From Marsupella aquatica (lineage: Eukaryota; Plantae; Marchantiophyta), in assembly GCA_973895155.1 (NCBI GenBank), contig OZ316899.1, positions 1,511,573 through 1,575,572 of the forward strand: a stretch of DNA of 64,000 bases. Direction: 5' to 3'. Position numbers and translations under genes: made by a program. Below are positions 1-33,754 of the stretch, piece after piece. Under the pieces are notes generated by a model that saw nothing but the letters and a program-made list of their open reading frames with translations, searched no databases and had not been told where the DNA came from. Positions within the stretch are counted from its first letter, which is position 1. The number at the start of each line of letters is the position of its first letter.

Positions 1-59
1 TGCCCGAGAATACAGTTGCAGAATCGCTGGCCCAAGATAATTCTGTCGATCTTTCACAA

Positions 60-2696
60 TTGGATAATCCAGAACCACTGAGTGAAGCCGGTGGTTCGTC
101 TTCTAGTGAGACAAGCAGCAGTTCAGGCTTGGGCAGCCCAAACCCATTTGCTACCCGATCAGCTCTTCCTTTCGTTACCCTCCTAGCTCCAACCACGATG
201 GCTCGAAATAATGTGAGGTACGACCGGTTCTTCGGTACTTCCAAGGAGGATGCAGAGGTGTATTTGAAAGAATTTGAAGCTGCAGCTGCATCCAATGGAC
301 AGAGTCAAGACGCTGAAAAAGCCAATCTGTTTGGTGGTCTAATGAAAAAGGGTGCTCAGAAATGGTATGACCGTTTTCCGGACAAGCAGGATTGGGGGAA
401 ATTGAAGGCTGCTTTCTTGGCCAAATATAAAGAAGAAGGAGCAGCTGCGCGTGCCTTTGCCCGAATCTCACATCTGCACATGAAGAAACATGGGTCTGTG
501 AGGAAATATGCCGACAAATTATTGGATTTGGTAGATCAATATAATCCAGCTACCTCGAAATCTACTATCAAGGACTGGTTTATTAACGGTTTACCCTCCA
601 GGATTGCTCGTTACGTGAGACGAGAAGGTGGCACCACTTTGGAAGAAGTACAAGAGGCAGCCCAGAAGTACGTAGACTCGGAGATTTCAGAGAGAAAACG
701 AGTTAAGAAGGACCTGAAGAAAGACAAAAGAAAGAAGAAGAAAACGTCCAGGTCTAAATCTGACTCGGAGACGGAATCAAGTGAAAGTAGCACTAGTGAG
801 GAGGACGAGAGTACAAATTCGAGCACTAGTGATAGTTCAAGCTCAAGTTCCGACTCAGAATCCGTTGCTCCTAAAAAGAAGAAATCCTCTGTAAAAGGGA
901 ATAATAAAGTTCCCAACCAGAAGAAGATGGATCGCATGATGGAAGAACTCTCTGGCCAATTGTCCAAGTTGAATGTCAATATCGCCGCGGTAAAACCAGT
1001 ACGAAGGTTGCCTGCTCCCATGAGAATGAACGTATGGTGCACCCGATGCAGTCAGCAGGGCCATTACCCGAACGAGTGCCCCACATTACGAACCCCGGTG
1101 AATTATGTAGATGGTCAAGAAGAGGCTGAGGAGTATGAGTACGATCCCACGTATACCGTCCAAACAGCACCCCCTGGACAGTATTTCCCACCACCTCCTG
1201 CTTCCAGACCGACTTGGGGACCACCTAAGCCCACTTTCAATAAACCAACGTCAAGACCACCCATGGGACCCCCGGGAGGATACCCACCACGAGGAATGCC
1301 GCGTCAAAAAGGGGCTTGTTGGAATTGTGGCCAACCTGATCATTATTCACCCCAGTGCCCTTATCCCAAACAGGAGGTGGGGTATACACCTGTCTGTGGG
1401 AACTGTGGAAAAGAAGGACACTTACCGGTGGAATGCCCGAATCCGGCTAAGCCTAGGCTGATGGTTCGATTTGCTCAAGAGCCAGTTAAAGAAGCAAGTC
1501 GACCTGAAGCCAAGATTCGGATGGTTTATTCTGAAGAGATGGAGCAATGCAGCTTCATTCAACATATGGATGTAAATCGGGTGGAATTAAAGCCAGATTC
1601 ACTTTTTCATCAACCAGTATCCGGGGTGGTGCCTGATGTCTTGGTAAGTCATTTAGTGAAACCTGAAGTAGTTGGTATGCCGAATGATCGAGTTCAGAAT
1701 CGGGATAAAGTTCTGACTAATATTTACGCAACTACTCGTTCGAAGAAAAAGGAGACCAAGAAGCACGAGCATCAGAAGGTCGCGAAAGCTCCCAAGGATG
1801 AAGGGCGCAAGCCATGTAAGGAAGGCCTCGACAAAGAAGACGACCCTGCTTATGACCGATATGACCCAAAATACTTCTTGCCCGACATCTCTTTGGAAGT
1901 GAAAGACCATCTGGAAGAGCTAGTTAAGGAGCAAGTGCAATCTCCTAACCCACCAGTAGTAGTCAAAGCTAAAGAGCCACTGAAAAATCCAGGTTATGAT
2001 ATTGTTGAAGATGTCAAGAATCATCCTGCACATATCACCATTGGGGAATTATTACAGGACAATCCGGTTTATAGGCGACAGCTGAGGAGCCTCCTTGCAG
2101 GAAAACGGAGGAAGAAGAAGTTACCTTCTGTGGATGTGCTATGAACAGAGTGGGAGGACAAAGGACCGATGGAAATTGAGGTTCAAATCCAGGGGTGTGT
2201 CATTCGGAGAGTTCCTGTGGATGGAGGAGCCAGCGTTAATCTGATTACACAGTCAGCAGCATTTAATTTGGGTTTCACTAAGTTTGAGCCCACTCCCAAG
2301 ATTTTGCGCATGGCGGATCAGTCTCGTGTGGTACCCATAGGGAAACTGACCAAAGTAGAAACTTTGATTGCTGGTGTCCCTTTTCTGTTGGATTATGTGG
2401 TTATTAATCCGGAAATACCATCCAGCTTTCCTGTTTTGTTAGGCCGACCATGGTTGTATAAGGCTCAAGTTCAGGTTAATTGGCAATCTCAAGAGCTTTC
2501 ATTTGGGAAGCCTAAGGTGACTGTTAGTTGGGTTCCGGAACCACATTTTGGAGAAACACAAACAGATGATGGGTACACCTCGGATTTTTCGACCTCTTCG
2601 CTAGTCCTGCAGCCATTGGAATTTGAACTGGAGGAAGTTCGTTACTTGGAAGTTTATCTGTCTGATGCTCCCATAAAACCAACTAGGCCCTCCTGA
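60..2696 (+). pseudogene. gag: A1 gag-protease (starts before window; premature TGA at 2142-2144)
   Basis: Retrotransposon gag domain, three CCHC knuckles (CTRCSQQGHYPNEC, CWNCGQPDHYSPQC, CGNCGKEGHLPVEC) and protease VPVDGGASVN...LLGRPWL. A2 has CGA at the position of the stop. Confidence 0.9.
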
Positions 2697-5669
2697 CAAT
2701 TAACTTCATCATCGGAAGTGGGCCCAGCAGCAGACGAACCTCCTAATACTGAGGCTAATAGGGATTTACACCATGATATGGGAGTGTCAGCTACCCTTGA
2801 GCCATTTGCACCAGAAGTATCCAAACTTGGACTTCAGCCGGCAAACCTCACGGATGGAATTGTGGATCCAAAAGCTTGTCAGAAAATCGAAATTGAGCCA
2901 GGCAAGTTTTTGAATATTGGTAAGCATATCGAAGGAGAGCTACGGGAACAGTATATCAGTTTATTAACCCAGTATAAAGATGTCTTTGCCTGGAGTCATT
3001 CTGATTTAAAAGGTATCCATCCACATTTGGGCGAACATCGTATTGACCTTATGGAAGGAGCAGTACCTGTCCGACAGAGACAGTACCGTTTGAATCCCAA
3101 ATATTCCATCCTGGTTAAAGACGAGTTGGACAAGCTCACGACTGCTGGATTTATCTACCCGGTCTTGAGTAGTGAATGGGTCTCACCAATTGTCATTGTC
3201 CCCAAAAAGCCGGGACCCGATGGTAAAACGAAAATTTGCGTTTGTCAAGACTTCCGGAAGTTGAATGCTGCCACTCGGAAAGATCATTATCCTTTGCCAT
3301 TTATTGATCTGGTACTTGATTCAGTGGCCTTGCATGAGTTATACAGTTTTTTAGATGGGTACTCTGGTTATAACCAGGTGTCCATTCGGAAGGAGGATCG
3401 CGACAAGACTACGTTCACCACCGACTGGGGTACATATGCATTTACCATGATGCCTTTTGGGCTGTGTAATGCCCCGGGTACTTTTCAGCGCATTATGATG
3501 ATTATTTTTCAAGAATATTTGCGGCATTTCATGGAGATTTTTATTGACGACTTTTGTGTTTACGGGTCAGCGGCTGAACACCTCGTCCATTTGGAGAAGA
3601 CATTTCAGAAGTGTAGAGAGGCTCAGTTGTGTCTTCATCCAGAAAAGTGCTTTATTGGTATGAAGGAGGGAATTTTGTTAGGCCATGTTATTTCACAACG
3701 CGGCATTGAGGTTGATACAGAGAAGGTTAGAGTAATTATGGAGTTGCAACCACCGACCGATTTAAAGCAGCTTCGTGCTTTTCTGGGACATGTGGGGTAT
3801 TATCGTCGGTTCATTTATAAACATGCTAATATTGCCTTACCCTTAACCCAACTGTTAAAAAGTGATGTGGAATATACATGGAATGAGGAGCGGCAGCAAG
3901 CATTCCAGTTGCTCAAGGATCGGTTAATCTCTGCACCTATTTTGTCACCCCCAGATTGGACTAAGAAGTTTCATGTCTTCATTGACTCTTCTGCGTTCTG
4001 CATTGGAGCTAATCTCAGTCAGAAGGATGTGGAAAACCGTGACCATCCAATTTACTATGCCAGCCGCCAAATGAGTGCAGCCGAGAAAAACTACTCCGTC
4101 ACTGAACGGGAAGCTTTGGCCATCGTCTTTGCGTGTAAGAAATTTCGTCACTATTTGTTGGGGTATCAGGTTACTTTTCACACTGATCATAATTCCTTAA
4201 AATATTTGGTTAACCAAGTGGATCTCTCAGGACGAGTAGCCCGCTGGGTTTTACTACTCCAAGAATTTGATTATGAAGTTCATGTCCGACCTGGCAAACA
4301 TCATGAGAATGCAGACTTCCTATCTCGGTTACCTGGTCCGGAGAATTAGCATAATCTCTCCGATGAATTTCCTGACGAGCATTTGTGGCACATTGAAGGG
4401 GAGTCTTCTCGATATTTTAATATTGTGCACATGCTGCTTCATGGAACGTTCCCTGAAGGCTTTAATGCGGAAGAACGAGCTGTCTTTGCTCATAAGGTGG
4501 GTCCCTATACCATTATTCGGGGCACTTTGTTTAAACAAGGTCCTGATCAACAATTGCGACGTTGTCTAGAGGATAGGGAACTTCCCCAAGTAATTGAAGC
4601 TTTACATTCAGGAGAAACCGGTGGGCATTATGCTGTGAATACCACAGTTAAGAAAATTTTGGATGCTGGATACTGGTGGCCTACTATGCATCGAGATACT
4701 TACAATTTTATTAAGACCTGTGATCCCTGTCAAAGGATCGGGAAGCCCACTGCTAGTTCCAAATGGCCTCTTACGCCTATCCTTCCGTTGGCACCATTTG
4801 AGAAATGGGGGATTGATTTTATTGGCCCAATTTCTCCAGCAGCTCGGAAAAGCCGAAGCAAATATATTATTCTGGCCACTGATTATGCCACCAAATGGGT
4901 AGAGGCGAAAGCTACTCGCAAGAATGATGCTATAACCGCAGCTGCATTTCTCTTTGAGCACATTATCACCCGGTTTGGTTGTCCTTTGGAGTTGGTAAGC
5001 GATAGGGGTTTGCATTTTCTTAACTCAACTATTGAGTTAATCACTGACCTTTATCTTATCAAGCATCGCAAAACTACTCCTTACAACCCCCGAGCTAATG
5101 GCTTAACCGAGAGAGCTAATGGCATTATGGGCAAGATTCTGAATAAAATGGTAGAATCTCACAAGACAGATTGGGATGTGAAGCTCCATTCTGCATTATG
5201 GGCTTACCGCACCGCTGAGAAGATTACAACTCTTCACACCCCCTTCTATCTGACCTATGGCCTGAATAGTATTATTCCAATAGAATTTTCGTTACCAACG
5301 GAACGTATCTTGGTACCACACCGACTCTCTCCTTCAGATAGTCTCTCACATCGGTTTTCCAATATTGTTAAATTAGAAGAAGTTAGACTTTTAGCATTAG
5401 ACCATACAGTCACCATTCAGAACCAGCGTAAACTTGCTTATGATAAGAAGCTGCGCGTAGTGCAGTTAGATGTTGGTGATTTAGCATTAGTCTTTGATTC
5501 TCGTTATATGCTATTTCCTGGGAAACTTCATACTCATTGGATTGGTCCTTACCGAGTTACACACATCTGGGATAATGGTTCAGTTTCATTGACTACCTTA
5601 GATGGTCACCCACTTAACACTAGAATCAATGGGTTTAGGATTAAACGGTACTATGAGTCTTCCATTTAG
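2697..5669 (+). pseudogene. pol: A1 RT-RNase H-integrase (premature TAG at 4347-4349)
   Basis: RT QDFRKLNAATRKDHYPLPFID and FIDD; RNase H IDSSAFCIGANL; integrase HHCC, WGIDFIGP, SDRGLHF and GPY/F. A2 has CAG at the stop. Confidence 0.95.
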
Positions 5670-5691
5670 AATTCCACCTGGGACAGGTTGC

Positions 5692-5707
5692 AATTTAAGT
5701 GGAGGGC
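5692..5707 (+). promoter_or_regulatory. Internal polypurine-tract-like motif after integrase (A1)
   Basis: AATTTAAGTGGAGGGC, identical to the PPT at 9175-9190; near-identical copy in A2 at about 30245. Confidence 0.7.
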
Positions 5708-6052
5708 GGTAGTTATACTTAGTTAGAATTAGTGACCCTCCCTAGTAAGTATTCGGCATATTTTTTTAATTTTTTTTAGTTACTTTCAGTTTTTACATTG
5801 GACGCTGTGAAAAGCGTCCATTGTAACTCGACGCTGGGGAAGCGTCCACTTAGTTTACAAAGGACGTTGTGCAGAGGTCCGCTTTTGTATTAGTTCAGTT
5901 GCATGAGACGCTGTGAGCCGATGACTAGGCATCTTGTACAATGGCGGATTGCGACAGCTCAACGGGACGCTGAGGAGTAAGCAGTCGCGCTTCGCCCTAG
6001 TTCACTATGGAACACGATTCTCACTGAGCTTACGGAGCTAACAAGTCACGCG

Positions 6053-8626
6053 ATGGCGGAGACTGAGCTGACGACGCGACCAATACTCGCAGACATTCCA
6101 TCGAATGCAGTGCATAGGCGGCAGTTGAAGACGGCTCTGGCAAAAATGGGCTTGAAGAAGCTGCTTCAACTTCCTTGGAAGATTTGCGAATTCAGCCTTA
6201 TCGATCAAGGTGTCTGGGACGCTGAAGAAAGGATTGGTGTGCGCTCGCGTCCCAGTGTTTGGACTGAAGCGCTCATAGCGAAGGTCTATTCGACGCCGAT
6301 GGAGGGCGAGGATTTACAGAGGGTTGATTGTGAGCCTCGGGTTTATGTAGAATCCTTCTTCGCTCCAGGATCTTTCAAGAGGCGGAATGGATGGCTAGCG
6401 GCGGACTGCTTAGATAATTCTCTGCAGCGTCTATTTCGATTTCTGGCACCAATTTTCTACCCAGAAAGCCAGACGCGCATCACTCTTTCGTTCGCTGCAA
6501 CGGTGATCTGTTCATTAGAACAGACGCAGTCTATCAATTGGACGAAGGTTTTGCACCGAGTAATTCATACTCAGGTCAAAAATTTTCGTAGCAGGCTGAA
6601 AACGGGGAAAATAAGGTGTACCTACTTGGCCCCTTATTTAGCTCACATTTACCATAAGTATGACTGTCTGCTTGTCTTGGAAAAAGATTTTTATCGCAAC
6701 AATCAGAGAGCATCTACCGGTGAAGCAAATTATATGCCTGAAGTACGAGAAGTCCGAGCCAATTCCACAGTGGTAGAGCTATGTGCAATACTCGACTGTG
6801 AGGAACCTGAACTGGTGGGTGAAGTTCGGAAATTGAAAGAGACAAGAGCATCAGCTGAAGGGAGTGACGATCCGATTCTTCACCAACCAAGAGAGGCTCA
6901 AGTTGCCGAAGATGTTCCTTCAGCAATGCCAACAGGGTTGGAGCATTCTATGTCACCTCGACTCTCGTGTTCACCTTGTGCTGCCGAGCCTATTTATGAT
7001 GTTGATCAGGATAATTCTGCTTCTCGGATGAATGTTGAAGATGAGGTGAGGGTGGATGAAGAAGGTTTTTCAGGGGAACCTCTTCAACATTCTACTGCTG
7101 AGGACGAGTATGATGGATTTACTTCTACCCCTGTTTTGGTTCCCATAGAGGCAAATAGTGATGCTTTGCAGGCTTTACAGGAGTATGATTCGTCCGACTC
7201 TCTTAGTTCTAGCCCAAATATAGGTGAAATCCCTCTGGTCCAGGAGTCAGAAATATTAAGCTCAGAAATTGTGAAGCTGGTTAAAGTTGATTCGGAGGAT
7301 GCAATTGTGGATATAGACGAAGTAGGTGAACCAGTGACTTCTCCCCAATCTGTCGCAAGATACCCTGCCTGGTCTACACCTGGTTCACTCATATCGATTC
7401 CTTTGGATATAACTAAGGAATTAGATGAGGCAATAGCCGCGATAGGAGCTCCTTCATTTCCGCCTGTAAAATGGGTTTCTCCTGAAGATGAGTTGATTGA
7501 AGGAGGCTCTGCTGGTTTTCCGAGTCGCAATCAGGTATCTGGTAATATGGGTATATCTGTACCCATATTGGTACCCGAGACACCCGCTTCGACAACCAGC
7601 TCAGCACCAGTTTCATTGGCTACAAACGAGGATAAAAACATTCGGGAGGAGTTTTCAGTGACGTATACTCGAAAATCTTGGAAACGGTTGCGCCATGCTA
7701 TCAGTCGACAGATCTTTCCTGAAGCATCTTCCCAGGATTTTGAACAGGGAGAAGCACCTATCGGAACAGACGAGCTACCCCTTCCTGTACTTTTGACAGA
7801 TCGAACTAACCAGGAAGTCTCTTTACCTAGCGATAATTTTAAAGAAGAACTTCCTGTTTTAGTACCAATGCATCCCATTGCAGATCAACCAGCTACTGTT
7901 GCAAGAGAAGAATTTGAACCACTGGAGCCCGAACCTTCTGCTCCTTCGTCTCCTGTTACATTGCCAATTCGACCAGTTAAGGAGTCAGTGATTCCTTCCG
8001 CTATGCCAGATGTAATTTTCCGTTGGATAGGAGCACCAAGTGATGGAGAAGAAGACGAAGACCCTCGCATTATCAGAGTACCTCCTCGACTTCGGCATAC
8101 AGTGGATTTGCCACCCCGAAATCCTATCCCTAATTTGGCTTCAATTCACAGGTGGGAGAAGAAACATTTTCGAGTAGCTTTTCGACATCTGGAGATGGAG
8201 AGCATTTTGCAGCAGCAGCAGATTTTGCCAATGACATCCCATCCGAGGATTCGTAGTTTGATTCGCACATATGAACCTGGGAAGGCGGTTCCTCCCATTG
8301 ATAAGGACAGACGACATAAGTTTTCGGAGTTCGAAATTTGGTGTTGGGTGTATATGCTTCGACGAGCTCAAGCTCCATTTCCGCCCCTTGTGCCGGAAAT
8401 TCCATGGCCCTATCCATACTATGTTTGGGTTTGTCCTGGTGGGTTTGCTATTCCAATTAAATATGAGAAGAAGCTTGTTAAGCTAAGGGAGCAGTTGATT
8501 ACAAAACAATGTATGCTACCGGCTTCCCAAGGGTTCAAGTCGCTTAGGTGTTTAGCGTTCCTACCTATTATTCCTTCTTATCCGGATGTGATTATTCAAG
8601 GTGTTTTATCTAGGACACAGATTTGA
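6053..8626 (+). CDS. A1 extra 3' ORF (ORF3, env position), 857 aa, unknown function
   Basis: Open 857 aa ORF between INT and the 3' LTR, conserved in A2. Structured N-terminal part, acidic Ser/Pro-rich middle and aromatic-rich C-terminal part. Confidence 0.85.
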   Translation: MAETELTTRPILADIPSNAVHRRQLKTALAKMGLKKLLQLPWKICEFSLIDQGVWDAEERIGVRSRPSVWTEALIAKVYSTPMEGEDLQRVDCEPRVYVESFFAPGSFKRRNGWLAADCLDNSLQRLFRFLAPIFYPESQTRITLSFAATVICSLEQTQSINWTKVLHRVIHTQVKNFRSRLKTGKIRCTYLAPYLAHIYHKYDCLLVLEKDFYRNNQRASTGEANYMPEVREVRANSTVVELCAILDCEEPELVGEVRKLKETRASAEGSDDPILHQPREAQVAEDVPSAMPTGLEHSMSPRLSCSPCAAEPIYDVDQDNSASRMNVEDEVRVDEEGFSGEPLQHSTAEDEYDGFTSTPVLVPIEANSDALQALQEYDSSDSLSSSPNIGEIPLVQESEILSSEIVKLVKVDSEDAIVDIDEVGEPVTSPQSVARYPAWSTPGSLISIPLDITKELDEAIAAIGAPSFPPVKWVSPEDELIEGGSAGFPSRNQVSGNMGISVPILVPETPASTTSSAPVSLATNEDKNIREEFSVTYTRKSWKRLRHAISRQIFPEASSQDFEQGEAPIGTDELPLPVLLTDRTNQEVSLPSDNFKEELPVLVPMHPIADQPATVAREEFEPLEPEPSAPSSPVTLPIRPVKESVIPSAMPDVIFRWIGAPSDGEEDEDPRIIRVPPRLRHTVDLPPRNPIPNLASIHRWEKKHFRVAFRHLEMESILQQQQILPMTSHPRIRSLIRTYEPGKAVPPIDKDRRHKFSEFEIWCWVYMLRRAQAPFPPLVPEIPWPYPYYVWVCPGGFAIPIKYEKKLVKLREQLITKQCMLPASQGFKSLRCLAFLPIIPSYPDVIIQGVLSRTQI

Positions 8627-8638
8627 AGGACACCATTT

Positions 8639-9115: not shown

Positions 9116-9174
9116 TGAAGAACATGTCACTCGCTTCTTATTCAATTCGGTCATGTCTTGTGGGGACACGGCGA

Positions 9175-9190
9175 AATTTAAGTGGAGGGC
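9175..9190 (+). promoter_or_regulatory. Polypurine tract of A1
   Basis: AATTTAAGTGGAGGGC ends 2 nt before the TG of the LTR. Confidence 0.85.
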
Positions 9191-9192
9191 TA

Positions 9193-10582
9193 TGTGGTAT
9201 GGGTGTCCCTGCAATTTTTTCTGGAAACTTGTTTATTTTTAGCATATCACAAGATTTACTTACACTTTAGACACCTTCCGGCCAACATTTACTTGTTCTG
9301 GACACTTATAGAAATATTTGACATCTCCGGCTTTCCTGACGATTCCTAGTGTACTTTGCCCGACGCTGTGACCAGCGCCCGTTTCTTTTACTCAAGACGC
9401 TGCGGAAGCGTCCAACCTCCTCATGACGCTTTTGGCAGTGCCCGACCGCCACCAAGACTCTATGAGGATTTCGACCGACGCTGTGGAAAGCGTCAGCTTC
9501 AACACACGACGCTGTGAGCAGCGTCCACCCTAGTATTGACGCTGTGAGCAGTGTGAGCAGCGTCCGTTGGTTTTACTTAAGACGCTTCTAGCAGCGTCCA
9601 GATTCTCCCGACGCTTCTAGCAGCGTCCGCTCAACACTTAGTTTTTGAAGTAGATTACTAGTAAAGTAGTATTCTACCACCCTTGTTGAAGTACTTATGC
9701 TGTGCTTCTCCCTTGTTTAGTTTTAAGCTTGGAAAGGCACGACTGTTCTTACCTCCTCCATTTTAGGATTCCAGCACTTATAAGACAGAGTAGAATGCTC
9801 ATTTGAAGTAGAGAGAAATAGAGTTAATACTGTATTCAGAATTGAGTCTTCTGAATAGTTTTCTCCTCCTTCCATTGTAACAAGGCATGCTGTGAGTGTT
9901 TTGTATGGAAGTAAAGCTATATTGATTGAAGTTAAGATTGAATTCAAGAGATTCCTGTGGTGATTGAATTCAGTTGCAGATTTCTGAAACTCGTATTGAA
10001 TTCACTGCTAGGCTTGCTTGCAGAGTCGGGATTCGCTAGCCAATTCAAGAATAGTTAATGATAAATGAGAAGTAAATTCTGATTCTCAGAGTAGTTAGTA
10101 CTGTTGCTTTGATTCTGGAATATGGTTTAGAGTTTGACTGAATTGCGTATCGCTGATGTCAAACCATGTTGACGGCATTTTAAATCATATCATTCATTTG
10201 CAATCAGAAAGCTTCTGCTTCATCAGATTGAGAATTCCATTATCATTAACCTTTGTGTTTTGAAGAGTGAGATGGATGAATTATGAGATAGATTTCATGT
10301 CTATACTGAGCCCAAATCCTTTCTGAAGGAGTGGCAGTAGCAGTTTGTAGTCTCTAAATCCTTACTCATTTCTTCTCTAATTCATAAATCAGAAGTTCAG
10401 TTACTTTGTTGTTTGTTTATTCGATTTTTTTATTGAGAAGTGAAGTCAACATAGAGCTCAAGACTCTAAATCACTCGGAGTGATAAAAGTTATACAATTC
10501 ATTCTGAAATCTGTTCTTAAAGGGATCGAAACCCTGGTTTTAGGTGAGGAGAGTCACTTTTGATACTTAGCACTATACGACA
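9193..10582 (+). repeat. 3' LTR of A1 (1390 bp)
   Basis: TG...CA ends with 7/8 inverted match. Homologous to the LTRs at 21655-22950 and 33755-35049; longer because of extra palindrome units. Confidence 0.93.
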
Positions 10583-11576: not shown

Positions 11577-11919
11577 TGTTGAGCATAGACAACATTCGTA
11601 ACAGCAAGCCCATGAACCATCCAACGCACAATAGTCGACACAGAGAGATACGTGGTTCACCTCCACATGAGGTTACGTCCATGGGAACACACAAGAGCTT
11701 TACTGCACTCTAGGCCGACCGGCCATACCAAGCATCCACAGCACAAGCTCTCCTATCTCTCAACTAGCTCCGTAACAATGAGCCTAAGTTCCACCAGGGT
11801 CTGGCATCAGCCCTGGCTATATACACAACAGCACTATCGCTAACATTAGCTAAGTCCTAACCAGAGTTAGACTAGCTGTGGTTAGCTCATGAGTCACAAG
11901 ACTAGAGCAATATCTAACA
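11577..11919 (-). repeat. Copia 3' LTR
   Basis: 343 bp direct repeat of 13222-13564, with about 10 differences by eye. Confidence 0.93.
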
Positions 11920-21654: not shown

Positions 21655-22950
21655 TGTGGTATGGGTGTCCCTGCAATTTTTTCTGGAAACTTGTTTATTT
21701 TTAGCATATCTCAAGATTTACTTACACTTTAGACGCCTCCGGCCAACATTTACTTGTTCTGGACACTTATAGAAATATTTGACATCTCCGGCTTTCCTGA
21801 CGATTCCTAGTGTACTTTGCCCGACGTTGTGACCAGCGTCCGTTTCTTTTACTCATGACGCTTTTGGCAGCGCCCGACCGCCACCAAGACTCTATGAGGA
21901 TTTCACACGACGTTGTGAGCAGCGTCCACCCTAGTATTGACGCTGTGAGCAGCGTCCGTTGGTTTTACTTCAGACGTTTTCTAGCAGCGTCCGCTCGTCA
22001 CTTAGACTTAGTTTTTGAAGTAGATTACTAGTAGAGTAGTATTTTGCCACCCTGGAAGTACTTATGTTGTACTTCTCCCTTGTTTAGTTTTAAGCTTGGA
22101 AAGGCACGACTGTTCTTGCCTCCTCCATTTTTGGATTCCAGCACTTATAAGACAGAGTAGAGTGATCATTTGAAGTAGAGAGAAATAGACTTAATACTGT
22201 ATTCAGAATTGAGTCTTCTGAATAGTTTCCTCCTCCTTCCATTGTAACAAGGCATGTTGTGAGTGTTTTGTATGGAAGTAAAGCTGTATTGATTGAAGTT
22301 GAGATTGAATTCAAGAGATTCCTGTGGTGATTGAATTTAGTTACAGATTTTTGAAAGTCGTATTGAATTCACTGCTAGGCTTGCTTGCAGAGTCGGGATT
22401 CGCTAGCCAATTCAAGAATAGTTAATGATAAATGAGAAGTAAATTCTGATTCTCAGAGTAGTCAGTACCGTTGCTTTGATTCTGGAATATGGTTTAGAGT
22501 TTGACTGAATTGCGCATCGCTGACGTCAAACCATGTTGACGGCATTTTAAATCATATCATTCATTTGCAACCAGAAAGCTTCTAGTTCATCAGATTGAGA
22601 ATTCCATTATCATTAACCTTTGTGTTTTGAAGCGTGAGATTGATGAATTGTGAGGCAGATTTCATGTCTATACTAAGCCCAAATCCTTTTTGAAGGAGTG
22701 GCATTAGCAGCTTGTAGTCTCTAAATCCTTACTCATTTCTTCTTTGATTCATAAATCAAAAGTTCAGTTACTTGGTTGTTTGTTTATTTGATTTTTTTGT
22801 TGAAAAGTGAAGTCAGCATAGAGCTCAGGGCTCTAAATCACTCAGAGTGATAAAAGTTATACAATTCATTCTGAAATCTATTCTTAAAGGGATCGAAACC
22901 CTGGTTTTAGGTGAGAAGAGTCACTTTTGATACTTTAGCACTATACGACA
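21655..22950 (+). repeat. 5' LTR of A2 (1296 bp)
   Basis: About 10 substitutions and 1 indel versus 33755-35049, by eye. Confidence 0.95.
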
Positions 22951-22956
22951 TCTTTT

Positions 22957-22974
22957 TGGCGCCGCTGCCGGGGA
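22957..22974 (+). promoter_or_regulatory. PBS of A2, tRNA-Asp type
   Basis: TGGCGCCGCTGCCGGGGA, one mismatch to the Athila-type tRNA-Asp PBS TGGCGCCGTTGCCGGGGA. Confidence 0.88.
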
Positions 22975-24169
22975 ACGAATTTAAGATTGAATTGACGTAC
23001 AGGCAGTGTATGCCAGAAGGAGCTAGACGGGAGAGGAATTCACGTTCTACTATAATTGTGAAGGTGCGTCATCACTGCAGTTAAAAAGATGAAGAGCTTC
23101 CATTTCGAGGTGATGCTGTACTCTATCCAAAGCGCCCCGGAAGCTCTCTTAAGAGTATTGGAAAAATTTGTGGTGCCAAACTTAAGAGAAGAAACCCCTC
23201 TCCCACCAGAAAAGGCCTCACAGAGAGGAGCTGTTGCTCGTCAAGTTGCTTTGGAGACAATCGAAGACACCAAAGACACTTTGAGTGACAAGTGAAGTTA
23301 TCATAACTTTGCTCGGGATGTATGATTTGTAAAATTGTCCAACCATCCTGGTTCGTGTGACCGATGCCACCTATCCAATCTTTGGGAACATTAAGAATTA
23401 GGAATTTGAGGAATCGTTATGTTAATTCTTGGGTTCTGAGCCTGAGAGGGAGGAATGGCATACATTGGTTAACTATCACCTGGTGGGAAGATGAAAGTTT
23501 GCATTTAGTAATATTAAGGCTGAATGGTAGGATCACATAGGAGAGATATTTAGTCATTTCCATTCGGGAGTTAGCGGAAGGAATCATGCACCAGGAATTG
23601 CGTAGAAGATTAGGAAGGAGATAGACGCCTGATTGGCCTAGTGTAGCGTACCATGTGGTAAAGAAATTTCAGGGTGTAGGAAGTCGGAGATTATGGGGAA
23701 CGCCCGGTTCCATTAATCGCCACCGTAAGGACGAGATAAGGAAGGACGCTGCGAAGAGCATCCAATGCGATTCGTCCCAGAAGACTCCACAAGTCAAGAC
23801 GCTTCCAGTAGCGTCCGATCCCAGTGGACGCTGTGAGCAGCGTCCGGCGGAATCTGTGATGAACCAACGTGCGCGACGCTTCTGGTGTGCCTTTCCGCGT
23901 CTCAACCCCGAGGGACGCACCAGGGAAAACGAGGTTTTAGAATCTCGACTGGTCACTGAAGGGAAGTATTAGCTATGGGAACGGGATAGCAAGGGGGAGG
24001 AATCATGCAAGGGATGTTGAACGACGCTACGGGAAGTCACTTTGAGGAAGCAGGTTCATATCTCCCGGAGTGGGGTGATAACGTCGCACCTAAATAATGA
24101 CTCCTTACATAAAGACTCCTGAGGAGCGGGTCGGGTGTCTCAAAATCACCCGTGCTTGGAGAATGAGGG

Positions 24170-27100
24170 ATGTCTGAGGGAGATCCACCAAATAAAAGAA
24201 AACCTACCAAGACCTCCAGTAATTCGGATGCCGAAAAATCAGTAGTGACCCCTCGAACATTATTACCCGAATTCCAGTCACCAGGAGCACCTGCACCGGG
24301 TAGTGTGTGGAAACAAGTGAGATCTATTCAAGAGGCAAGTGGCTCTGTGGAAAGGCCCACGTCGACCCGAACCCTATTTGTAAATCTTCGTTCAGGTCCA
24401 AAACTGATTGGTTCTCAAAAGATCAAGCTCCGCCACCAGACAGTACATTCGGTGAACCAAATTGACTCTGGTGTGGATAGTGCCACTGAGAGGGCCTTAT
24501 CTCATACTGAAGGAAGAAATTTGGGTTTGCCCGAGAACACAGTTGCAGAACCGCTGGCCCAAGATAATTCTGTCGATCTTTTACAATTGGATAATCCAGA
24601 ACCACTGAGCGAAGCCGGTGGTTCGTCCTCTAGTGAGACAAGCAGTAGTTCTGGTAGCAGCAGCCAATCCGGCAGTTCAGGCTTGGGCAGCCCAAACCCA
24701 TTTGCTACCCGATCAGCTCTTCCTTTTGTTACCCTCCTAGCTCCAACCACGATGGCTCGAAATAATGTGAGGTACGACCGGTTCTTTGGTACTTCCAAGG
24801 AGGATGCAGAGGTGTATTTGAAAGAATTTGAAGCTGCAGCTGCATCCAATGGACAGAGTCAAGACGCTGAAAAAGCCAATCTGTTTGGTGGTCTAATGAA
24901 AAAGGGTGCTCAGAAATGGTATGACCGTTTCCCGGACAAGCAGGATTGGGGGAAATTGAAGGCTGCTTTCTTGGCCAAATATAAAGAAGAAGGAGCAGCT
25001 GCGCGTGCCTTTGCCCGAATCTCACATCTGCACATGAAGAAACATGGGTCTGTAAGGAAATATGCCGACAAATTATTGGATTTGGTAGATCAATATAATC
25101 CAGCTACCTCGAAATCTACTATCAAGGACTGGTTTATTAACGGTTTACCCTCCAGGATTGCTCGTTACGTGAGACGAGAAGGTGGCACCACTTTGGAAGA
25201 AGTACAAGAGGCAGCCCAGAAGTACGTGGACTCGGAAATTTCAGAGAGAAAACGAGTTAAGAAAGACCTGAAGAAAGACAAAAGAAAGAAGAAGAAAATG
25301 TCCAGGTCTAAATCTGACTCGGAGGCGGAATCAAGTGAAAGTAGCACTAGTGAGGAGGACGAGAGTACAAATTCGAGCACTAGTGATAGTTCAAGCTCAA
25401 GTTCCGACTCAGAATCTGTTGCTCCTAAAAAGAAGAAATCCTCTGTAAAAGGGAATAATAAAGTTCCCAACCAGAAGAAGATGGATCGCATGATGGAAGA
25501 ACTCTCTGGTCAATTGTCCAAGTTGAATGTCAATATTACCGCGGTAAAACCAGTGCGAAGGTTGCCTGCTCCCATGAGAATGAACGTATGGTGCACCCGA
25601 TGCAGTCAGCAGGGCCATTACCCAAACGAGTGCCCCACATTACGAACTCCGGTGATTATGTAGATGGTCAAGAAGAGGCTAAGGAGTATGAGTACGACCT
25701 CGCGTATACCGTCCAAACAGCACCCCCTGGACAGTATTTCCCACCACCTCCTGCTTCCAGGCCGACTTGGGGACCACCTAAGCCCACTTTCAATAAACCA
25801 ACGTCAAGACCACCCATGGGACCCCCGGGAGGATATCCACCACGAGGAATACCACGTCAAAAAGGGGCTTGTTGGAATTGTGGCCAACCTGATCATTATT
25901 CACCCCAGTGCCCTTATCCCAAACAGGAGGTGGGGTATACACCTGTCTGTGGAAACTGTGGAAAAGAAGGACACTTACCGGTGGAATGCCCGAATCCGGC
26001 TAAGCCTAGGCTGATGGTTCGATTTGCTCAAGAACCAGTTAAAGAAGCCAGTCGACCTGAAGCCAAGATTCGGATGGTTTATTCTGAAGAGATGGAGCAA
26101 TGCAGCTTCATTCAACATATGGATGTAAATCGGGTGGAATTAAAGCCAGATTCACTTTTTCATCAACCAGTATTCGGGGTGGTGCCTGATGTCTTGGTAA
26201 GTCATTTAGTGAAACCGGAAGTAGTTGGTATGCCAAATGATCGAGTTCAGAATCGGGATAAAGTTCTGACTAATATTTACGCAACTACTCGTTCGAAGAA
26301 AAAGGAGACCAAGAAGCACGAGCATCAGAAGGTCGCGAAAGCTCCCAAGGATGAAGGGCGCAAGCCATGTGAGGAAGGCCTAGACAAAGAAGACGACCCT
26401 GCTTATGACCGATATGACCCAAAATACTTCTTGCCCGACATCTCTTTGGAAGTGAAAGACCATCTGGAAGAGCTAGTTAAGGAGCAAGTGCAATCTCCTA
26501 ACCCACCAGTAGTAGTCAAAGCTAAAGAACCACTGAAAAATCCAGGTTATGATATTGTTGAAGATGTCAAGAATCATCCTGCACATATCACCATTGGGGA
26601 ATTATTACAGGACAATCCCGTTTATAGGCGACAGCTGAGGAGCCTCCTTGCAGGAAAACGGAGGAAGAAGAAGTTACCTTCTGTGGATGTGCTACGAACA
26701 GAGTGGGAGGACAAAGGACCAATGGAAATTGAGGTTCAAATCCAGGGGTGTGTCATTCGGAGAGTTCCTGTGGATGGAGGAGCCAGCGTTAATCTGATTA
26801 CACAGTCAACAGCATTTAATTTGGGTTTCACTAAGTTTGAGCCCACTCCCAAGATTTTGTGCATGGCGGATCAGTCTCGTGTGGTACCCATAGGAAAGTT
26901 GACCAAAGTAGAAACTTTGATTGCTGGTGTCCCTTTTCTGTTGGATTATGTGGTTATTAATCCGGAAATACCATCCAACTTTCCTGTTTTGTTAGGCCGA
27001 CCATGGTTGTATAAGGCTCAAGTTCAGGTTAATTGGCAATCTCAAGAGCTTTCATTTGGGAAACCTAAGGTGACTGTTAGTTGGGTTCCGGAACCACATT

Positions 27101-27249
27101 TTGGAGAAACACAAACAGATGATGGGTACACCTCGGATTTTTTGACCTCTTCGCTAGTCCTGTAGCCATTGGAATTTGAACTGGAGGAAGTTTGTTACTT
27201 GGAAGTTTATTTGTCTGATGCTCCCATAAAACCAACTAGGCCCTCCTGA
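24170..27249 (+). pseudogene. gag: A2 gag-protease (1 bp deletion near 25654, premature TAG at 27163-27165)
   Basis: ORFs 24170-25663 and 25588-27165, colinear with A1. Confidence 0.9.
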
Positions 27250-30221
27250 CAATTAATTTCATCATCGGAAGTGGGCCCAGCAGCAGACAAACCTCCTAAT
27301 ACTGAGTCTACTGGGGATTTACACCATGATATGGGAGTGTCAGCTACCCTTGAGCCAGTTACACCAGAAGTATCCGAACTTGGACTTCAGCCGGCAAACC
27401 TCACGGATGGAATTGTGGATCCAAAAGCTTGCCAAAAAATCGAAATTGAGCCAAGCAAGTTTTTGAATATTGGTAAGCATATCGAAGGGGAGCTACGGGA
27501 ACAGTATATCAGTTTATTAACCCAATATAAAGATGTTTTTGCCAGGAGTCATTCTGATTTAAAAGGTATCCATCCACATTTGGGCGAACATCGTATTGAC
27601 CTTATGGAAGGAGCAGTACCTGTCCGACAGAGACAGTACCGTTTGAACCCCAAATATTCCATCCTGGTTAAAGACGAGTTCGACAAGCTCACGGCTGCTG
27701 GATTTATCTACCCGGTCTTGAGTAGTGAATGGGTCTCACCAATTGTCATTGTCCCCAAAAAGCCGGGACCCGATGGTAAAACAAAAATTCGCGTTTGTCA
27801 AGACTTCCGGAAGTTGAATGCTGCCACTCGGAAAGATCATTATCCTTTGCCATTTATTGATCTGGTACTTGATTCAGTGGCCTTGCATGAGTTATACAGT
27901 TTTTTAGATGGGTACTCTGGTTATAACCAGGTGTCCATTCAGAAGGAGGATCGCGACAAGACTACGTTCACCACCGACTGGGGTACGTATGCATTTACCA
28001 TGATGCCTTTTGGGCTGTGTAATGCCCCAGGTACTTTTCAGCGCATTATGATGATCATCTTTCAAGAATATTTGCGGCATTTCATGGAGATTTTTATTGA
28101 CGACTTTTGTGTTTACGGGTCAGCGGCTGAACACCTCGTCCATTTGGAGAAGACATTTCAGAAGTGTAGAGAGGCTCAATTGTGTCTTCATCCAAAAAAG
28201 TGCTTTATTGGTATGAAGGAGGGAATTTTGTTAGGCCATGTTATTTCACAACGCGGCATTGAGGTTGATACGGAGAAGGTTAGAGTAATTGTGGAGTTGC
28301 AACCACCGACCGATTTAAAGCAGCTTCGTGCTTTTCTGGGACATGTGGGGTATTATCGTCGGTTCATTTATAAACATGCTAATATTGCCTTACCCTTAAC
28401 CCAACTGTTAAAAAGTGATGTGGAAGATACATGGAATGAGGAGCGGCAGCAAGCATTCCAGTTGCTCAAGGATCGGTTAATCTCTGCACCTATTTTGTCA
28501 CCCCCAGATTGGACTAAGAAGTTTCATGTCTTCATTGACTCTTCTGCGTTCTGCATTGGAGCTAATCTTAGTCAGAAGGATGTGGAAAACCGTGACCATC
28601 CAATTTACTATGCCAGCCGCCAAATGAGTGCAGCCGAGAAAAACTACTCTATCACTGAACGGGAAGCTTTGGCCATCGTCTTTGCGTGTAAGAAATTTTG
28701 TCACTATTTGTTGGGGTATCAGGTTATTTTTCACACTGATCATAATTCCTTAAAATATTTGGTTAACCAAGGGGATCTCTCAGGACGAGTAGCCCGGTGG
28801 GTTTTACTACTCCAAGAATTTGATTATGAAGTTCATGTCCGACCTGGCAAACATCATGAGAATGCAGACTTCCTATCTCGGTTACCTGGTCCAGAGAATC
28901 AGCATAATCTCTCCGATGAATTTCTTGACGAGCATTTGTGGCATATTGAAGGGGAGTCTTCTCGATATTTTAATATTGTGCACATGCTGCTTCATGGAAC
29001 ATTTCCTGGAGGCTTTAATTCGGAAGAACGAGCTGTCTTTGCTCATAAGGTGGGTCCCTATACCATTATTCGGGGCACTTTGTTTAAACAAGGTCCTGAT
29101 CAACAATTGCGACGTTGTCTAGAGGATAGGGAACTTCCCCAAGTAATTGAAGCTTTACATTCAGGAGAGACCGGTGGGCATTATGCTGTGAATACCACAG
29201 TTAAGAAAATTTTGGATGCTGGATACTGGTGGCCTACTATGCATCGGGATACTTACAATTTTATTAAGACCTGTGATCCCTGTCAAAGGATCGGGAAACC
29301 CACTGCTAGTTCCAAATGGCCTCTTACGCCTATCCTTCCGTTGGCACCATTTGAGAAATGGGGGATTGATTTTATTGGCCCAATTTCTCCAGCAGCTCGG
29401 AAAAGCCGAAGCAAATATATTATTCTGGCCATTGATTATGCCACCAAATGGGTAGAGGCGAAAGCTACTCGCAAGAATGATGCTATAACCGCAGCTGCAT
29501 TTCTCTTTGAGCACATTATCACCCGGTTTGGTTGTCCTTTGGAGTTGGTAAGCGATAGGGGTTTGCATTTTCTTAACTCAACTATTGAATTAATCACTGA
29601 CCTTTATCTTATCAAGCATCGCAAAACTACTCCTTACAACCCCCGAGCTAATGGCTTAACCGAGAGAGCTAATGGCATTATGGGCAAGATTCTGAATAAA
29701 ATGGTAGAATCTCACAAGGAAGATTGGGATGTGAAGCTCCATTCTGCATTATGGGCTTACCGCACCGCTGAGAAGATTACAACTCTTCACACCCCCTTCT
29801 ATCTGACCTATGGCCTGAATAGTATTATTCCTATAGAATTTTTGTTACCAACGGAACGTATCTTGGTACCAACCGACTCTCCCCTTCAGATAGTCTCTCA
29901 CATCGGTTTTCCAATATTGTTAAATTAGAAGAAGTTAGACTTTTAGCATTAGACCATACAGTCACCATTCAGAACCAGCGTAAACTTGCTTATGATAAGA
30001 AGCTACGCGTAGTGCAGTTAGATGTTGGTGATTTAGCATTAGTCTTTGATTCTCGTTCTATGCTATTTCCTGGGAAACTTCATACTCATTGGATTGGTCC
30101 TTACCAAGTGTCACACATCTGGGATAATGGTTCAGTTTCATTGACTACCTTAGATGGTCACCCACTTAACACTAGAATCAATGGGTTTAGGATTAAACGG
30201 TACTATGAGTCTTCCATTTAG
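27250..30221 (+). pseudogene. pol: A2 RT-RNase H-integrase (frameshift near 29869)
   Basis: 885 aa ORF 27271-29928 plus the GPY/F tail at 30012-30221, colinear with A1. Confidence 0.93.
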
Positions 30222-30602
30222 AATTCCACCTGGGACAGGTTGCAGTTTAAGTGGAGGGCGGTAGTTGTACTTAGTTAGAATTAGTGACCCTCCCTAGTAA
30301 GTATTCGGAATTTTTTAATTTTTTTTAGTTACTTTCAGTTTTTACATTGGACGCTGTGAGCAGCGTCCATTGTAACTCGACGCTGGGGAAGCGTCCACTT
30401 AGTTTACAAAGGACGCCGTGCGCAGCGTCCGCTTTTGTATTAGTTCAGTTGCATGAGATGCTGTGAGCCGATGACTAGGCGTCTTGTACGACGGCGGATT
30501 GCGATAGCTCAACGGGACGCTAAGGAGTAAGCAGTCACGCTTCGATCTAGTTCACTATGGAACACGATTCTCATTGAGCTTACGGAGCTAACGAGTCACG
30601 CG

Positions 30603-33188
30603 ATGGCGGAGACTGAGCTGACGACGCGACCAATACCCGCAGACATTCCATCGAATGCAGTGCATAGGCGGCAGTTGAAGATGGCTCTGGCAAAAATGGG
30701 CTTGAAGAAGCTGCTTCAACTTCCTTGGAAGATTTGCGAATTCAGCCTTATCGATCAAGGTGTCTGGGATGCTGAAGAAAGGATTGGTGTGCGCTTGCGT
30801 CCCAGTGTTTGGACTGAAGCGCTCATAGCGGAGGTCTATTCGACGCCGATGGAGGGCAAGGATTTACAGAAGGTTGACTGTGAGCCTCGGGTTTATGTAG
30901 AATCCTTCTTCGCTCCAGGATCTTTCAAGAGGCAGAATGGATGGCTAGCGGCGGACTGCTTAGATAATTCTCTGCAGCGTCTATTTCAATTTCTGGCACC
31001 AATTTTCTACCCAGAAAGCCAGACGCGCATTACTCTTTCGTTCGCTGCAACGGTGATTTGTTCATTAGAACAGACGCAATCTATCAATTGGACGAAGGTT
31101 TTGCACCGAGTAAGTCATACTCAGGTCAAATTTTTTTGTAGCAGGCTGAAAACGGGGAAAATAAGGTGTACCTACTTGGCCCCTTATTTAGCTCACATTT
31201 ACCATAAGTATGACTGTCTGCTTGCCTTGGAAAAAGATTTTTATCGCAACAATCAGAGAGCATCTACCGGTGAAGCAAATGATATGCCTGAAGTACGAGA
31301 AGTCCAAGCCAATTCCACAGTGGTAGAGCTATATGCAATACTCGACTGTGAGGAACCTGAACTGGTGGGTGAAGTTCGGAAATTGAAAGAGACAAGAGCA
31401 TCAGCTGAAGGGAGTGACGATCCGATTCTTCACCAACCAAGAGAGGCTCAAGTTGCCGAAGATGTTCCTTCAGCAATACCAACAGGGTTGGAGAATTCTA
31501 TGTCACCTCGACTCTCGCCTTCACCTTGTGCTGCCAAGCCTATTTATGATTTTGATCAGGATAATTCTGCTTCTCGGAAGAATGTTGAAGATGAGGTGAG
31601 GGTGGATGAAGAAGGGTTTTCAGGGGAACCTCTTCAACATTCTACTGCTGAGGACGAGTATGATGGATTTACTTCTACCCCTGTTTTGGTTCCCATAGAG
31701 GCAAATAGTGATGCTTTGTAGGCTTTACAGGAGTATGATTCGTCCGACTCTCTTAGTTCTAGCCCAAGTATAGGTGAAATCCCTTTGGTCCGGGAGTCAG
31801 TAGAACCTTTGGCAATATTAAGCTCAGAGATTGTGAAGCTGGTTAAAGTTGATTCGGAGGATGCAATTGTAGATATAGACGAAGTAGGTGATCCAGTGAC
31901 TTCTCCCCAATCTGTCGCAAGATCCCCTGCCTGGCCTACACCTGGTTCACTCATATCGATTCCTTTGGATATAACTAAAGAATTAGATGAGGCAATAGCC
32001 GAGATAGGAGCTCCTTCATTTCCACCTGTAAAATGGGTTTCTCCTGAAGATGAGTTGATTGAAGGAGGCTCTGCTGGTTTTCCGAGTCGCAATCAGGTAT
32101 CTGGGAATATGGGTATATCTGTACCCATATTGGTACCCGAGACACCCGTTTCGACAACCAGCTCAGCACCAGTTTCGTTGGCTACAAACGAGGGTAAACA
32201 CATTCGGGAGGAGTTTTCAGTGACGTATACTCGAAAACTTTGGAAACGGTTGCGCCATGCTATCAGTCGACAGATCTTTCCTGAAGCATCTTCCCAGGAT
32301 TTTGAACAGGGAGAGACACCTATCGGGACAGACGAGCTACCCCTTCCTGTACTTTTGGCAGATCGAACTAACCAGGAAGTCTCTTTACCTAGTGATAATT
32401 TTGAAGAAGAACTTCCTGTTTTAGTACCAATGCATCCCACTGCAGATCAACCAGCTGCTGTTGCAAGAGAAGATTTTGAACCACTGGAGCCAGAACCTTC
32501 TGCTCCTTCGTCTCCTGTTACATTGCCAATTCGGCCAGTTAAGGAGTCAGTGATCCCTTCCGCTATGCCAGATGTAATTTTCCGTTGGATAGGAGCACCA
32601 AGTGATGGGGAAGAAGACGAAGACCCTCGCATTATCAGAGTACCTCCTCGACTTCGGCATACAGTGGATTTATCACCTCGAAATCCTATCCCTAACTTGG
32701 CTTCAATTCACAGGTGGGAGAAGAAACATTTTCGGGTAGCTTTTCGACATCTGGAGATGGAGAGCATTTTGCAGCAGCAGCAGATTTTGCCAATAACAGC
32801 CCATCCGAGGATTCGTAGTTTGATTCGCACATATAAACCTGGAAAGGCGGTTCCTCCCATTGATAAGGACAGACGACATAAATTTTCGGAGTTCAAAATT
32901 TGGTGCTGGGTGTATATGCTTCGACGAGCTCAAGCTCCATTTCCGCCCATTGTGCCGGAAATTCCATGGCCCTATCCATACTATGTTTGGGTTTGTCCTG
33001 ATGGGTTTGCTATTCCAATTAAATATGAGAAGGAGCTTGTTAAGCTAAGGGAACAGTTGATTACAAAACAATGTATGCTACCGACTTCCCAAGGGTTCAA
33101 GTCGCTTAGGTGTTTAGCGTTCCTACCTATTATTCCTTCTTATCCGGATGTGATTATTCAAGGTATTTTGTCTAGGACACATATTTGA
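30603..33188 (+). pseudogene. A2 ORF3 (premature TAG at 31719-31721)
   Basis: Colinear with A1 6053-8626. Confidence 0.85.
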
Positions 33189-33200
33189 AGGACACCATTT

Positions 33201-33677: not shown

Positions 33678-33754
33678 TGAAGAACATGTCACTCGCTTCT
33701 GATTCAATTCGGTCATGTCTTGTGGGGACACGGCAAAATTTAAGTGGAGGGCTA

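Follow-up and report, generated by a model that had tools for sequence, protein, structure and literature searches.

Arrays of a CG-containing palindrome in the non-coding regions of a Ty3/gypsy retrotransposon of Marsupella aquatica, and their suggested association with a third open reading frame

The stretch of DNA analysed here, called the window throughout, comprises 64,000 nt of the Marsupella aquatica assembly GCA_973895155.1 (contig OZ316899.1, positions 1,511,573-1,575,572, forward strand). It is a nest of plant transposons, with a CACTA transposase, a copia reverse transcriptase fragment, and several Ty3/gypsy elements. Family A is represented by two copies, A1 and A2, whose features are collected in Table 1. 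Its order of Pfam domains (Retrotrans_gag, zf-CCHC, RVT_1, RT_RNaseH, Integrase_H2C2, and rve), together with its LTRs, primer-binding site, polypurine tracts, and target-site duplication, makes it a Ty3/gypsy LTR retrotransposon (Metaviridae); no Pfam match to a chromodomain was found in family A. The target-site duplication of A2 is 5 bp long with one mismatch (AAGGA / AAGAA), and its primer-binding site is identical in two relatives described below, L003 and L126. Downstream of pol, each copy carries an additional gene, ORF3. The polypurine tract preceding the A1 3' LTR recurs as an exact copy in the spacer between pol and ORF3, and this 16-mer has 4 matches where 0.09 are expected.

Table 1. 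Features of family A copies A1 and A2, in window coordinates.
Feature	Position	Strand	Remarks
Copy A1	1-10582	+	5' end cut by window
A1 gag-pol	1..5669	+	Pfam, tblastn map; 3 internal stop codons
A1 internal polypurine-tract copy	5692..5707	+	16 nt, just past pol stop
A1 spacer array	5795..5980	+	exact 5801-5818, 5830-5846; degenerate near 5863; half-sites 5907, 5966
A1 ORF3	6053..8626	+	intact, 857 aa
A1 3' polypurine tract	9175..9190	+	
A1 3' LTR	9193..10582	+	TG...CA ends
A1 U3 array	9362..9627	+	9 units, 5 exact palindromes
Copy A2	21655-35049	+	LTRs 99.2% identical
A2 5' LTR	21655..22950	+	
A2 5' LTR U3 array	21823..21991	+	5 units
A2 primer-binding site	22957..22974	+	18 nt, starts 6 nt past LTR end
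A2 leader array	23745..23880	+	23745 (1 mismatch), exact 23798 and 23827, half-site 23875
A2 gag-pol	24170..29928	+	1 frameshift, 2 internal stops
A2 internal polypurine-tract copy	30244..30259	+	1 mismatch
A2 spacer array	30350..30429	+	units 30350, 30379, 30412
A2 ORF3	30603..33188	+	1 internal stop
A2 3' polypurine tract	33737-33752	+	
A2 3' LTR	33755..35049	+	U3 array 33923-34091
Exact palindrome starts, copy A1	5801, 5830, 9396, 9477, 9508, 9581, 9610		
Exact palindrome starts, copy A2	21939, 23798, 23827, 30350, 30379, 34009		

Where dinucleotide-preserving shuffles predict 0.01 matches, the palindrome GACGCT-N4..7-AGCGTC is found exactly 13 times in the whole window. These 13 sites, together with a roughly equal number of degenerate copies, all fall within three non-coding regions of family A: the U3 part of the LTR, the 5' leader, and the spacer between pol and ORF3. 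Degenerate units, defined by up to 2 mismatches, are found in the same clusters as the exact ones. Outside the arrays, the only low-stringency matches are a site in pol (4110, with its A2 counterpart at 28663) and one in another Ty3/gypsy element, element B (38716); with 2 mismatches each, they are at chance level. Counted over both strands of the window, the hexamer GACGCT appears 55 times where 14 occurrences are expected, and a search of the whole window for other repeated short hairpins with 6-bp arms found none. The feature is real and non-random. The original prediction had described fixed 6-bp arms at 5801 and 5830, six spacers, degenerate copies to about 5970, further clusters in the LTR (9362-9627) and 5' leader, and a near-absence from gag-pol. 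We recovered all of this: the six spacers are present, lone half-sites carry the spacer cluster to 5971, arrays lie at the LTR and leader coordinates that had been given, and gag-pol contains only the one chance-level site per copy.

The palindrome is the conserved core of a repeat unit of about 30 bp, and successive units are mostly spaced 29-34 bp apart. It combines dyad symmetry and intervening bases with a core of ACGCT/AGCGT, and CpGs are present in each motif. The arms are nearly invariant, the loops, which range from 5 to 7 nt, are moderately conserved, and the inter-unit sequence and flanks are almost uninformative; the arms thus surpass the spacers in conservation, a comparison that could have refuted the original prediction, with the caveat that the contrast is partly inflated because units were picked by their arms. 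The symmetry does not extend beyond the arms. Directly 3' of the second arm, 10 of 12 non-redundant units have a C, and the next base is a purine in all 12, whereas a G precedes the 5' arm in only 4 of the 12, leaving the C after the 3' arm without a mirror image.

How did one motif come to occupy three regions of the same element? The three arrays have in common only their 18-21-nt units and, for two of them, the 16-nt polypurine tract, while inter-unit sequence is unrelated from array to array. Since the arrays are alike only in motif and polypurine tract, it is the motif that was kept and not a duplicated block. The A1 and A2 LTRs are distinguished by three indels, which measure 29, 31, and 28 nt and each correspond to one whole unit with one palindrome, and the U3 array of A2 is shorter than that of A1 by exactly these three units. 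Copy number that differs in this way between copies is what neutral tandem repeats would produce if they arose by slippage, were copied between regions, and had no function, and the T-rich stretch before the 5' arm does look inherited from a common unit. Such repeats would not be expected to share nothing but the motif among three arrays, to keep their arms in a relative whose flanking non-coding sequence is largely dissimilar, or to be matched by CG motifs at corresponding places in distant relatives (both described below). We therefore consider a neutral origin very improbable.

The arrays are CpG-island-like. Their CpG observed/expected ratio is 1.14-1.40 and their GC content 0.51-0.58, compared with CpG ratios of 0.37-0.82 in the surrounding AT-rich sequence. 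Individual ratios are 1.14 for the A1 spacer, 1.17 for the A1 U3, 1.31 for the A2 5' U3, 1.24 for the A2 leader, and 1.40 for the A2 spacer. In most regions, 16-36% of the CpG columns differ between A1 and A2, nearly always through a change to TG/CA, against 2-3% of all sites; from this excess we conclude that the copies decayed as methylated DNA. In the A1/A2 comparison, CpG decay in the arrays resembles that in the rest of the element and the arrays are not clearly spared, which says little about active copies because both copies are old and broken.

What might the arrays do? The U3 array starts about 170 bp into the LTR and stops some 150 bp short of a TATA-like box, a hexamer near 9781 in the A1 LTR for which a conserved counterpart was not found in the relatives L003 or L004. 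The leader array lies 290-425 nt upstream of the gag ATG, and the spacer array 80-250 nt upstream of the ORF3 ATG; no TATA box upstream of ORF3 is evident in the pol-ORF3 spacer sequence. Judging from these placements and from the comparisons below, we give roughly even odds to the view that the arrays are dyad-symmetric protein-binding sites on double-stranded DNA that form cis-regulatory modules. The U3 array would then serve as an LTR enhancer, the leader array as a leader element ahead of gag, and the spacer array, situated between the internal polypurine-tract copy and the ORF3 start, as a control region for ORF3, with all arrays growing and shrinking by whole units. The leading candidate for the binder would be the ORF3 product, and a host transcription factor is the alternative. 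Within this scheme, we infer that a protein binds the arrays, that they act as DNA, that their role is regulatory, and that ORF3 is their partner. The original prediction had offered a dimeric DNA-binding site or serial RNA hairpins at each probable promoter region. As a structural reading of the motif this is sound, and the arrays do lie in non-coding control regions of one family.

The ORF3 protein consists of a basic N-domain (about aa 5-240, pI 9.3), an acidic disordered middle with a net charge of -49, and a basic C-domain (about aa 627-857, pI 9.6). The middle is highly variable between relatives and the end domains are conserved. Considered by charge alone, this layout is compatible with a nucleic-acid-binding regulator. 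Neither ORF3 nor any of 27 scanned relatives has a meaningful Pfam match, DUF1985 and DUF287 included, and none of the 10 ORF3 relatives that were looked up is named in its source. Public data contain more than 200 representative relatives of the N-domain, here taken as about aa 5-220, and a handful of the C-domain. The N-domain is confidently modelled as an all-alpha structure (pLDDT 83, pTM 0.76), for which no structural match was found in the PDB or BFVD, and a profile search with ORF3 found no sequence relative in the PDB; the model of the C-domain is poor (pLDDT 45). An N-domain unlike any known DNA-binding fold counts against arrays read as DNA sites. Two identities considered for ORF3 were rejected. 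It lacks the signal peptide and transmembrane anchor of an env protein and has no Pfam env match, and its highest 19-residue hydropathy, 1.48, is at the extreme C-terminus. It is not a VANC homologue, given the lack of a DUF1985 or DUF287 match and an N-domain fold without a known relative.

Relatives of family A were also compared for motif and ORF3. Two Logan contigs (L001 and L002) encode a protein 55% identical to ORF3 over both domains and open with the same palindrome, which has another loop and stands about 180 nt ahead of the ORF3 start codon. The two arms are kept, as is the C that follows them, although the upstream non-coding sequence otherwise aligns poorly with that of family A, except for one conserved 12-mer at 5955-5966. 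In L004, whose ORF3 homologue is about 40% identical, direct GGACGCT copies with at most a degenerate inverted partner stand immediately before and after the gene. L003, a 10.9-kb metagenome contig with gag, pol, an ORF3 homologue, an LTR, and the identical primer-binding site, contains units based on AGCGCT, which form arrays in U3, the leader, and the region just ahead of ORF3, as well as in two variable coding stretches, with 14 AGCGCT sites in place of the 0.5 expected. A further lineage (L057, L064, L008, L082, and L126) contains TCCGGA at 5-14 times expectation, dispersed throughout the element without restriction to one of the three codon phases; those members that extend to the post-pol region (L057, L082, and L126) carry the ORF3 N-domain. 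L125, a 36% ORF3 relative, lacks such a motif and carries a different 62-bp repeat in its upstream region.

A metagenome scan with the primer-binding site, which is common to unrelated lineages, returned 120 loci, 7 with a related gag and 4 with an ORF3 domain. Of the 81 loci that have this primer-binding site and span at least 3 kb, only those with ORF3 contain an enriched CG palindrome; the 77 others have none, and they belong mostly to unrelated lineages whose ORF3 status was checkable in a minority. Two CpG-poor loci with a weakly related gag (L103 and L024) have no motif. Element B, which has 57% pol identity to family A and its own post-pol ORFs, is without both the ORF3 domain and the motif. 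The original prediction would have been undermined by a motif equally common in unrelated repeats, and within the window, as element B illustrates, it is not. Hexamers enriched in element B were considered as a motif array and rejected, as they form a Glu/Ala-rich coding stretch.

Taken across the relatives that could be checked, these results suggest that enrichment of a CG palindrome or its half-site accompanies ORF3. The suggested link is one of co-occurrence in a small set of relatives, some of which are not independent of one another. Comparison among them points to selection. ORF3 is the leading candidate for the binder because of the CG-palindrome enrichment in checkable ORF3-bearing relatives, the lineage-specific motifs, and the basic ends around an acidic middle. 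Moreover, palindromes as short as AGCGCT and TCCGGA cannot form hairpins and point to symmetric recognition of duplex DNA, which is how dyad symmetry in three lineages with three motifs is most simply read.

Could the arrays act in RNA instead? They would then be serial 6-bp hairpins in the genomic and ORF3 transcripts, read by ORF3 or Gag, and would constitute a response element for export, translation, packaging, or dimerisation, similar to those that complex retroviruses have near the 3' end of their RNAs. A precedent for an element-encoded RNA export protein is the Cer1 retrotransposon, in which such a protein is reported to be needed for export of the genomic RNA (PMC10309623). All three arrays lie within the predicted genomic RNA in one orientation, and this single orientation, as for an RNA element, counts against recognition as DNA. 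Loop length varies from 5 to 7 nt while the arms are fixed, and the C after the 3' arm makes the motif asymmetric; such loops and an unmirrored C fit hairpins, or descent from a common unit, at least as well as they fit a rigid symmetric dimer. The array regions also fold much better than shuffled sequence (z -5.4, -3.05, and -2.7). These arguments are offset by several others. There is no covariation, the arms being identical in family A and the 55% relative, although there is none to count because the arms never vary. L004 keeps the half-site without the inverted arrangement, and the 6-bp palindromes of L003 and the TCCGGA lineage cannot fold. Since any arm can pair with any other, the U3 fold predicted as best joins units that lie far apart and not the two arms of one hairpin, and in mutated units pairing is broken about as often as a wobble pair is kept. 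Finally, Rfam covariance models gave no match at gathering score anywhere in the window. Overall, we think it unlikely that the arrays work as RNA hairpins.

The closest precedent for the arrays is the palindromic repeated-motif (RM) boxes of Sireviruses, in which a CpG core and intervening bases are likewise combined with dyad symmetry (Bousios et al. 2010, PMC2829016). RM boxes are present in many copies in the upstream half of the LTR, before the TATA box, and form CpG islands; more of them lie 5' of the env-like gene, in elements that also have multiple polypurine tracts, and a regulatory role has been proposed only (PMC2829016). Family A has the same combination of dyad motifs, CpG islands, boxes 5' of an extra gene, and extra polypurine tracts, and its U3 array lies upstream of a putative TATA box. 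Family A is nevertheless not a Sirevirus. Sireviruses are Ty1/copia elements with a CGG-CCG core, whereas family A is Ty3/gypsy with a GACGCT/AGCGTC core and, unlike Sireviruses, adds an array in the 5' leader as a third site. In Sireviruses the extra gene is env-like, while ORF3 belongs to an unrelated uncharacterised family and has no transmembrane segment. Furthermore, the boxes also occur in Sireviruses that lack the extra gene, whereas the family A motif was seen only in ORF3-bearing relatives.

In maize Sireviruses, the palindromes lie in a region that can form hairpins, from which small RNAs have been proposed to arise, and in which small-RNA matches and sequence evolution are concentrated (Bousios et al. 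2016, PMC4728375). This raises the prospect that the palindromes of family A are mainly triggers or targets of host silencing through hairpin-derived small RNAs, conserved by that conflict or by a linked promoter function independently of ORF3. The array regions are able to form hairpins, and CpG decay indicates that the copies were methylated. A 6-bp stem is short for a Dicer substrate, however, and a silencing trigger would hardly be kept at three places and across 55% ORF3 relatives unless the motif also served the element. As the 6-bp palindromes of distant relatives would also be left unexplained, we judge this quite improbable.

A different comparison, with VANDAL transposons and their VANC proteins, was drawn in the original prediction, in which ORF3 and the motif would form a sequence-specific system. 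In Arabidopsis VANDAL elements, VANC binding and hypomethylation have been shown, and VANC21 has as its motif a 9-mer rich in AT (Hosaka et al. 2017, PMC5735166). VANC target motifs are family-enriched, non-coding, in one orientation, and at high density, in tandem repeats gained and lost between copies; they differ between related families, and VANC proteins consist of conserved domains and a variable region (PMC5735166). Each of these traits of the motif has a parallel in family A, whose motif, within this window, is enriched in its own family and rare elsewhere, mostly non-coding, in one orientation, and dense; it is also gained and lost by whole units and lineage-specific. CpGs are present in every motif, and ORF3 has conserved domains around a highly variable middle, as VANC proteins do. 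By analogy, ORF3 could be a sequence-specific binder of the arrays that leads to methylation loss across its own family, which is a special case of the DNA-site reading preferred here. Against this, VANDALs are Mutator-like DNA transposons and family A is a retrotransposon with a CG palindrome in place of an AT-rich 9-mer; ORF3 has neither a DUF1985 or DUF287 match nor a known fold; and, in A1 and A2, which are old broken copies, CpGs in and around the arrays show the same TG/CA decay as the rest of the element. A VANC-like pair is thus doubtful. In choosing VANDAL as the parallel, the original prediction passed over the nearer Sirevirus precedent (PMC2829016). The parallel breaks down for protein homology and class of element, but the VANDAL-like array dynamics are borne out, and comparison ties the CG-palindrome enrichment to the ORF3 lineage.

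Family A also resembles the plant Tat/Retand elements, which carry tandem repeats and extra ORFs between pol and the 3' LTR whose function is not known (PMC11963269). Both are non-chromovirus Ty3/gypsy elements having a long post-pol region with extra ORFs and family-specific repeat arrays. The Retand ORFs are mostly antisense with a Transposase_28 domain (PMC11963269), whereas ORF3 is in sense orientation and has no Pfam match; and the Retand arrays are described as internal tandem repeats (PMC11963269), whereas the family A palindromes are common to LTR, leader, and spacer.

Returning to the arrays as sites on duplex DNA, who would read them? One answer, which we put forward tentatively and consider unlikely to be correct, is that ORF3 founds a family of retrotransposon-encoded, sequence-specific nucleic-acid-binding proteins that act as an independently arisen counterpart of VANC, either as transactivator or in anti-silencing. 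Each lineage would have its own CG palindrome, seeded through the element that encodes the protein and co-evolving with it: family A has GACGCT-N6-AGCGTC, L003 has AGCGCT, and the L057 lineage has TCCGGA. To our knowledge, the only well-studied transposon self-recognition system of this sort is found in DNA transposons. If the binder is indeed encoded by the element, family A would exemplify a self-recognition system in a plant LTR retrotransposon, and one protein family with three motif types would become available for studying the ways in which retroelements label and regulate copies of themselves. Should the binder instead be a host protein, the Sirevirus pattern would extend to Ty3/gypsy elements, implying convergent solutions for the expression of an extra gene. 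Either way, the motif provides a sharp diagnostic for annotating family A.

Window 1-40141 is built of a tandemly repeated unit, about 24.4 kb long, in which element B, the neighbouring Ty3/gypsy element, is combined with family A, whose copies A1 and A2 carry ORF3. How did this arrangement arise? Family A occupies an identical position in two consecutive B units, about 135 bp past the stop codon of B pol, and the flanks are homologous. The coding regions of A1 and A2 diverge by 2-3%, the B units diverge from each other by about 4%, and the LTRs of A1 and A2 diverge by about 8% as measured from BLAST hits, while the two LTRs of A2 differ by just 0.8%. No single simple history fits these divergences. 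Segmental duplication followed by conversion is a possible cause, as is repeated insertion at the same site.

Other sequences interrupt or adjoin the B units (see table). About 1.3 kb flanked by direct repeats is inserted in the first B unit, and the repeats with the sequence between them are probably a small LTR element. The second B unit is split by element C, a third Ty3/gypsy element on the minus strand (40518-48113), whose 837-aa ORF has no Pfam match. The post-pol ORFs of element B likewise gave no Pfam match and contain no ORF3 N-domain. Further transposon remains occupy window 48407-61152.

Positions of features in the window and in related loci
Feature	Sequence	Position	Remark
Polypurine tracts, A1	window	5692-5707 and 9175-9190	
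Polypurine-tract-like sequences	L003 (10.9-kb metagenome contig)	~3745-3775 and ~6540-6575	
Polypurine-tract-like sequence	L057 (TCCGGA lineage)	~6130-6150	
Polypurine-tract-like sequence	L126 (TCCGGA lineage)	~322-345	
12-mer CAGCTCAACGGG	window	5955-5966 (A1); 30505-30516 (A2)	
12-mer CAGCTCAACGGG	L001 (55% relative)	78-89	
344-bp direct repeats	window	11577-11920 and 13222-13565	pair, 97% identical
Element B post-pol ORFs	window	35468-36208 and 36361-37410	within 35167-39000
Element B Glu/Ala-rich coding-like stretch	window	38340-38640	3' of B post-pol ORFs, 5' of next gag
Element C LTRs	window	40518-41358 and 47267-48113	
37-bp tandem repeat	window	40850-40969 and 47609-47711	within element C LTRs
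Element C 837-aa ORF	window	44799-47312	
copia RT fragment	window	48407-49189	
ORF with RNase H1 N-terminal (Cauli_VI) domain and 63-bp tandem repeat	window	50385-51230	ORF on minus strand
465-bp tandem repeat	window	53532-54562	
CACTA transposase with DUF4218	window	56307-60103	

More than 120 metagenome contigs (L005-L124) contain the same 20-nt primer-binding-site string as family A. These belong mostly to unrelated LTR retrotransposon lineages, and the primer-binding site is therefore not diagnostic of the family A clade.

Relatives of family A carry motifs of their own. TCCGGA is 5-14 times over-represented across the whole loci of one lineage (L057, L064, L008, L082 and L126); one example has 56 sites in 7.5 kb where 4.3 would be expected. 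The sites are spread evenly over coding and non-coding sequence, with all three codon phases represented, and the excess may be a trait of either the element itself or its host. Arrays of AGCGCT-type units in L003 also lie within coding sequence, one ending the gag-protease ORF (637-700) and the other within the variable central part of its ORF3 homologue (5068-5130); at both places they translate into short repeated peptides. L004, with about 40% ORF3 identity, opens with a polypurine tract and LTR-start-like sequence (1-210) that precede its ORF3 homologue, and motif copies with LTR-like sequence follow immediately 3' of it (2030-2595). This homologue appears to be embedded in surroundings that resemble U3; recombination or chimeric assembly may have produced the contig.

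The 12-mer CAGCTCAACGGG, about 90 nt 5' of the ORF3 ATG, is kept in family A and in the 55% relative while its surroundings are not. Candidate roles for it are those of a start site, a splice acceptor or a factor site. In family A, a second polypurine-tract-like sequence lies directly 3' of pol, before ORF3. Its recurrence in distant relatives makes it probable that this post-pol copy truly serves as an internal plus-strand primer site and did not arise as a chance repeat.
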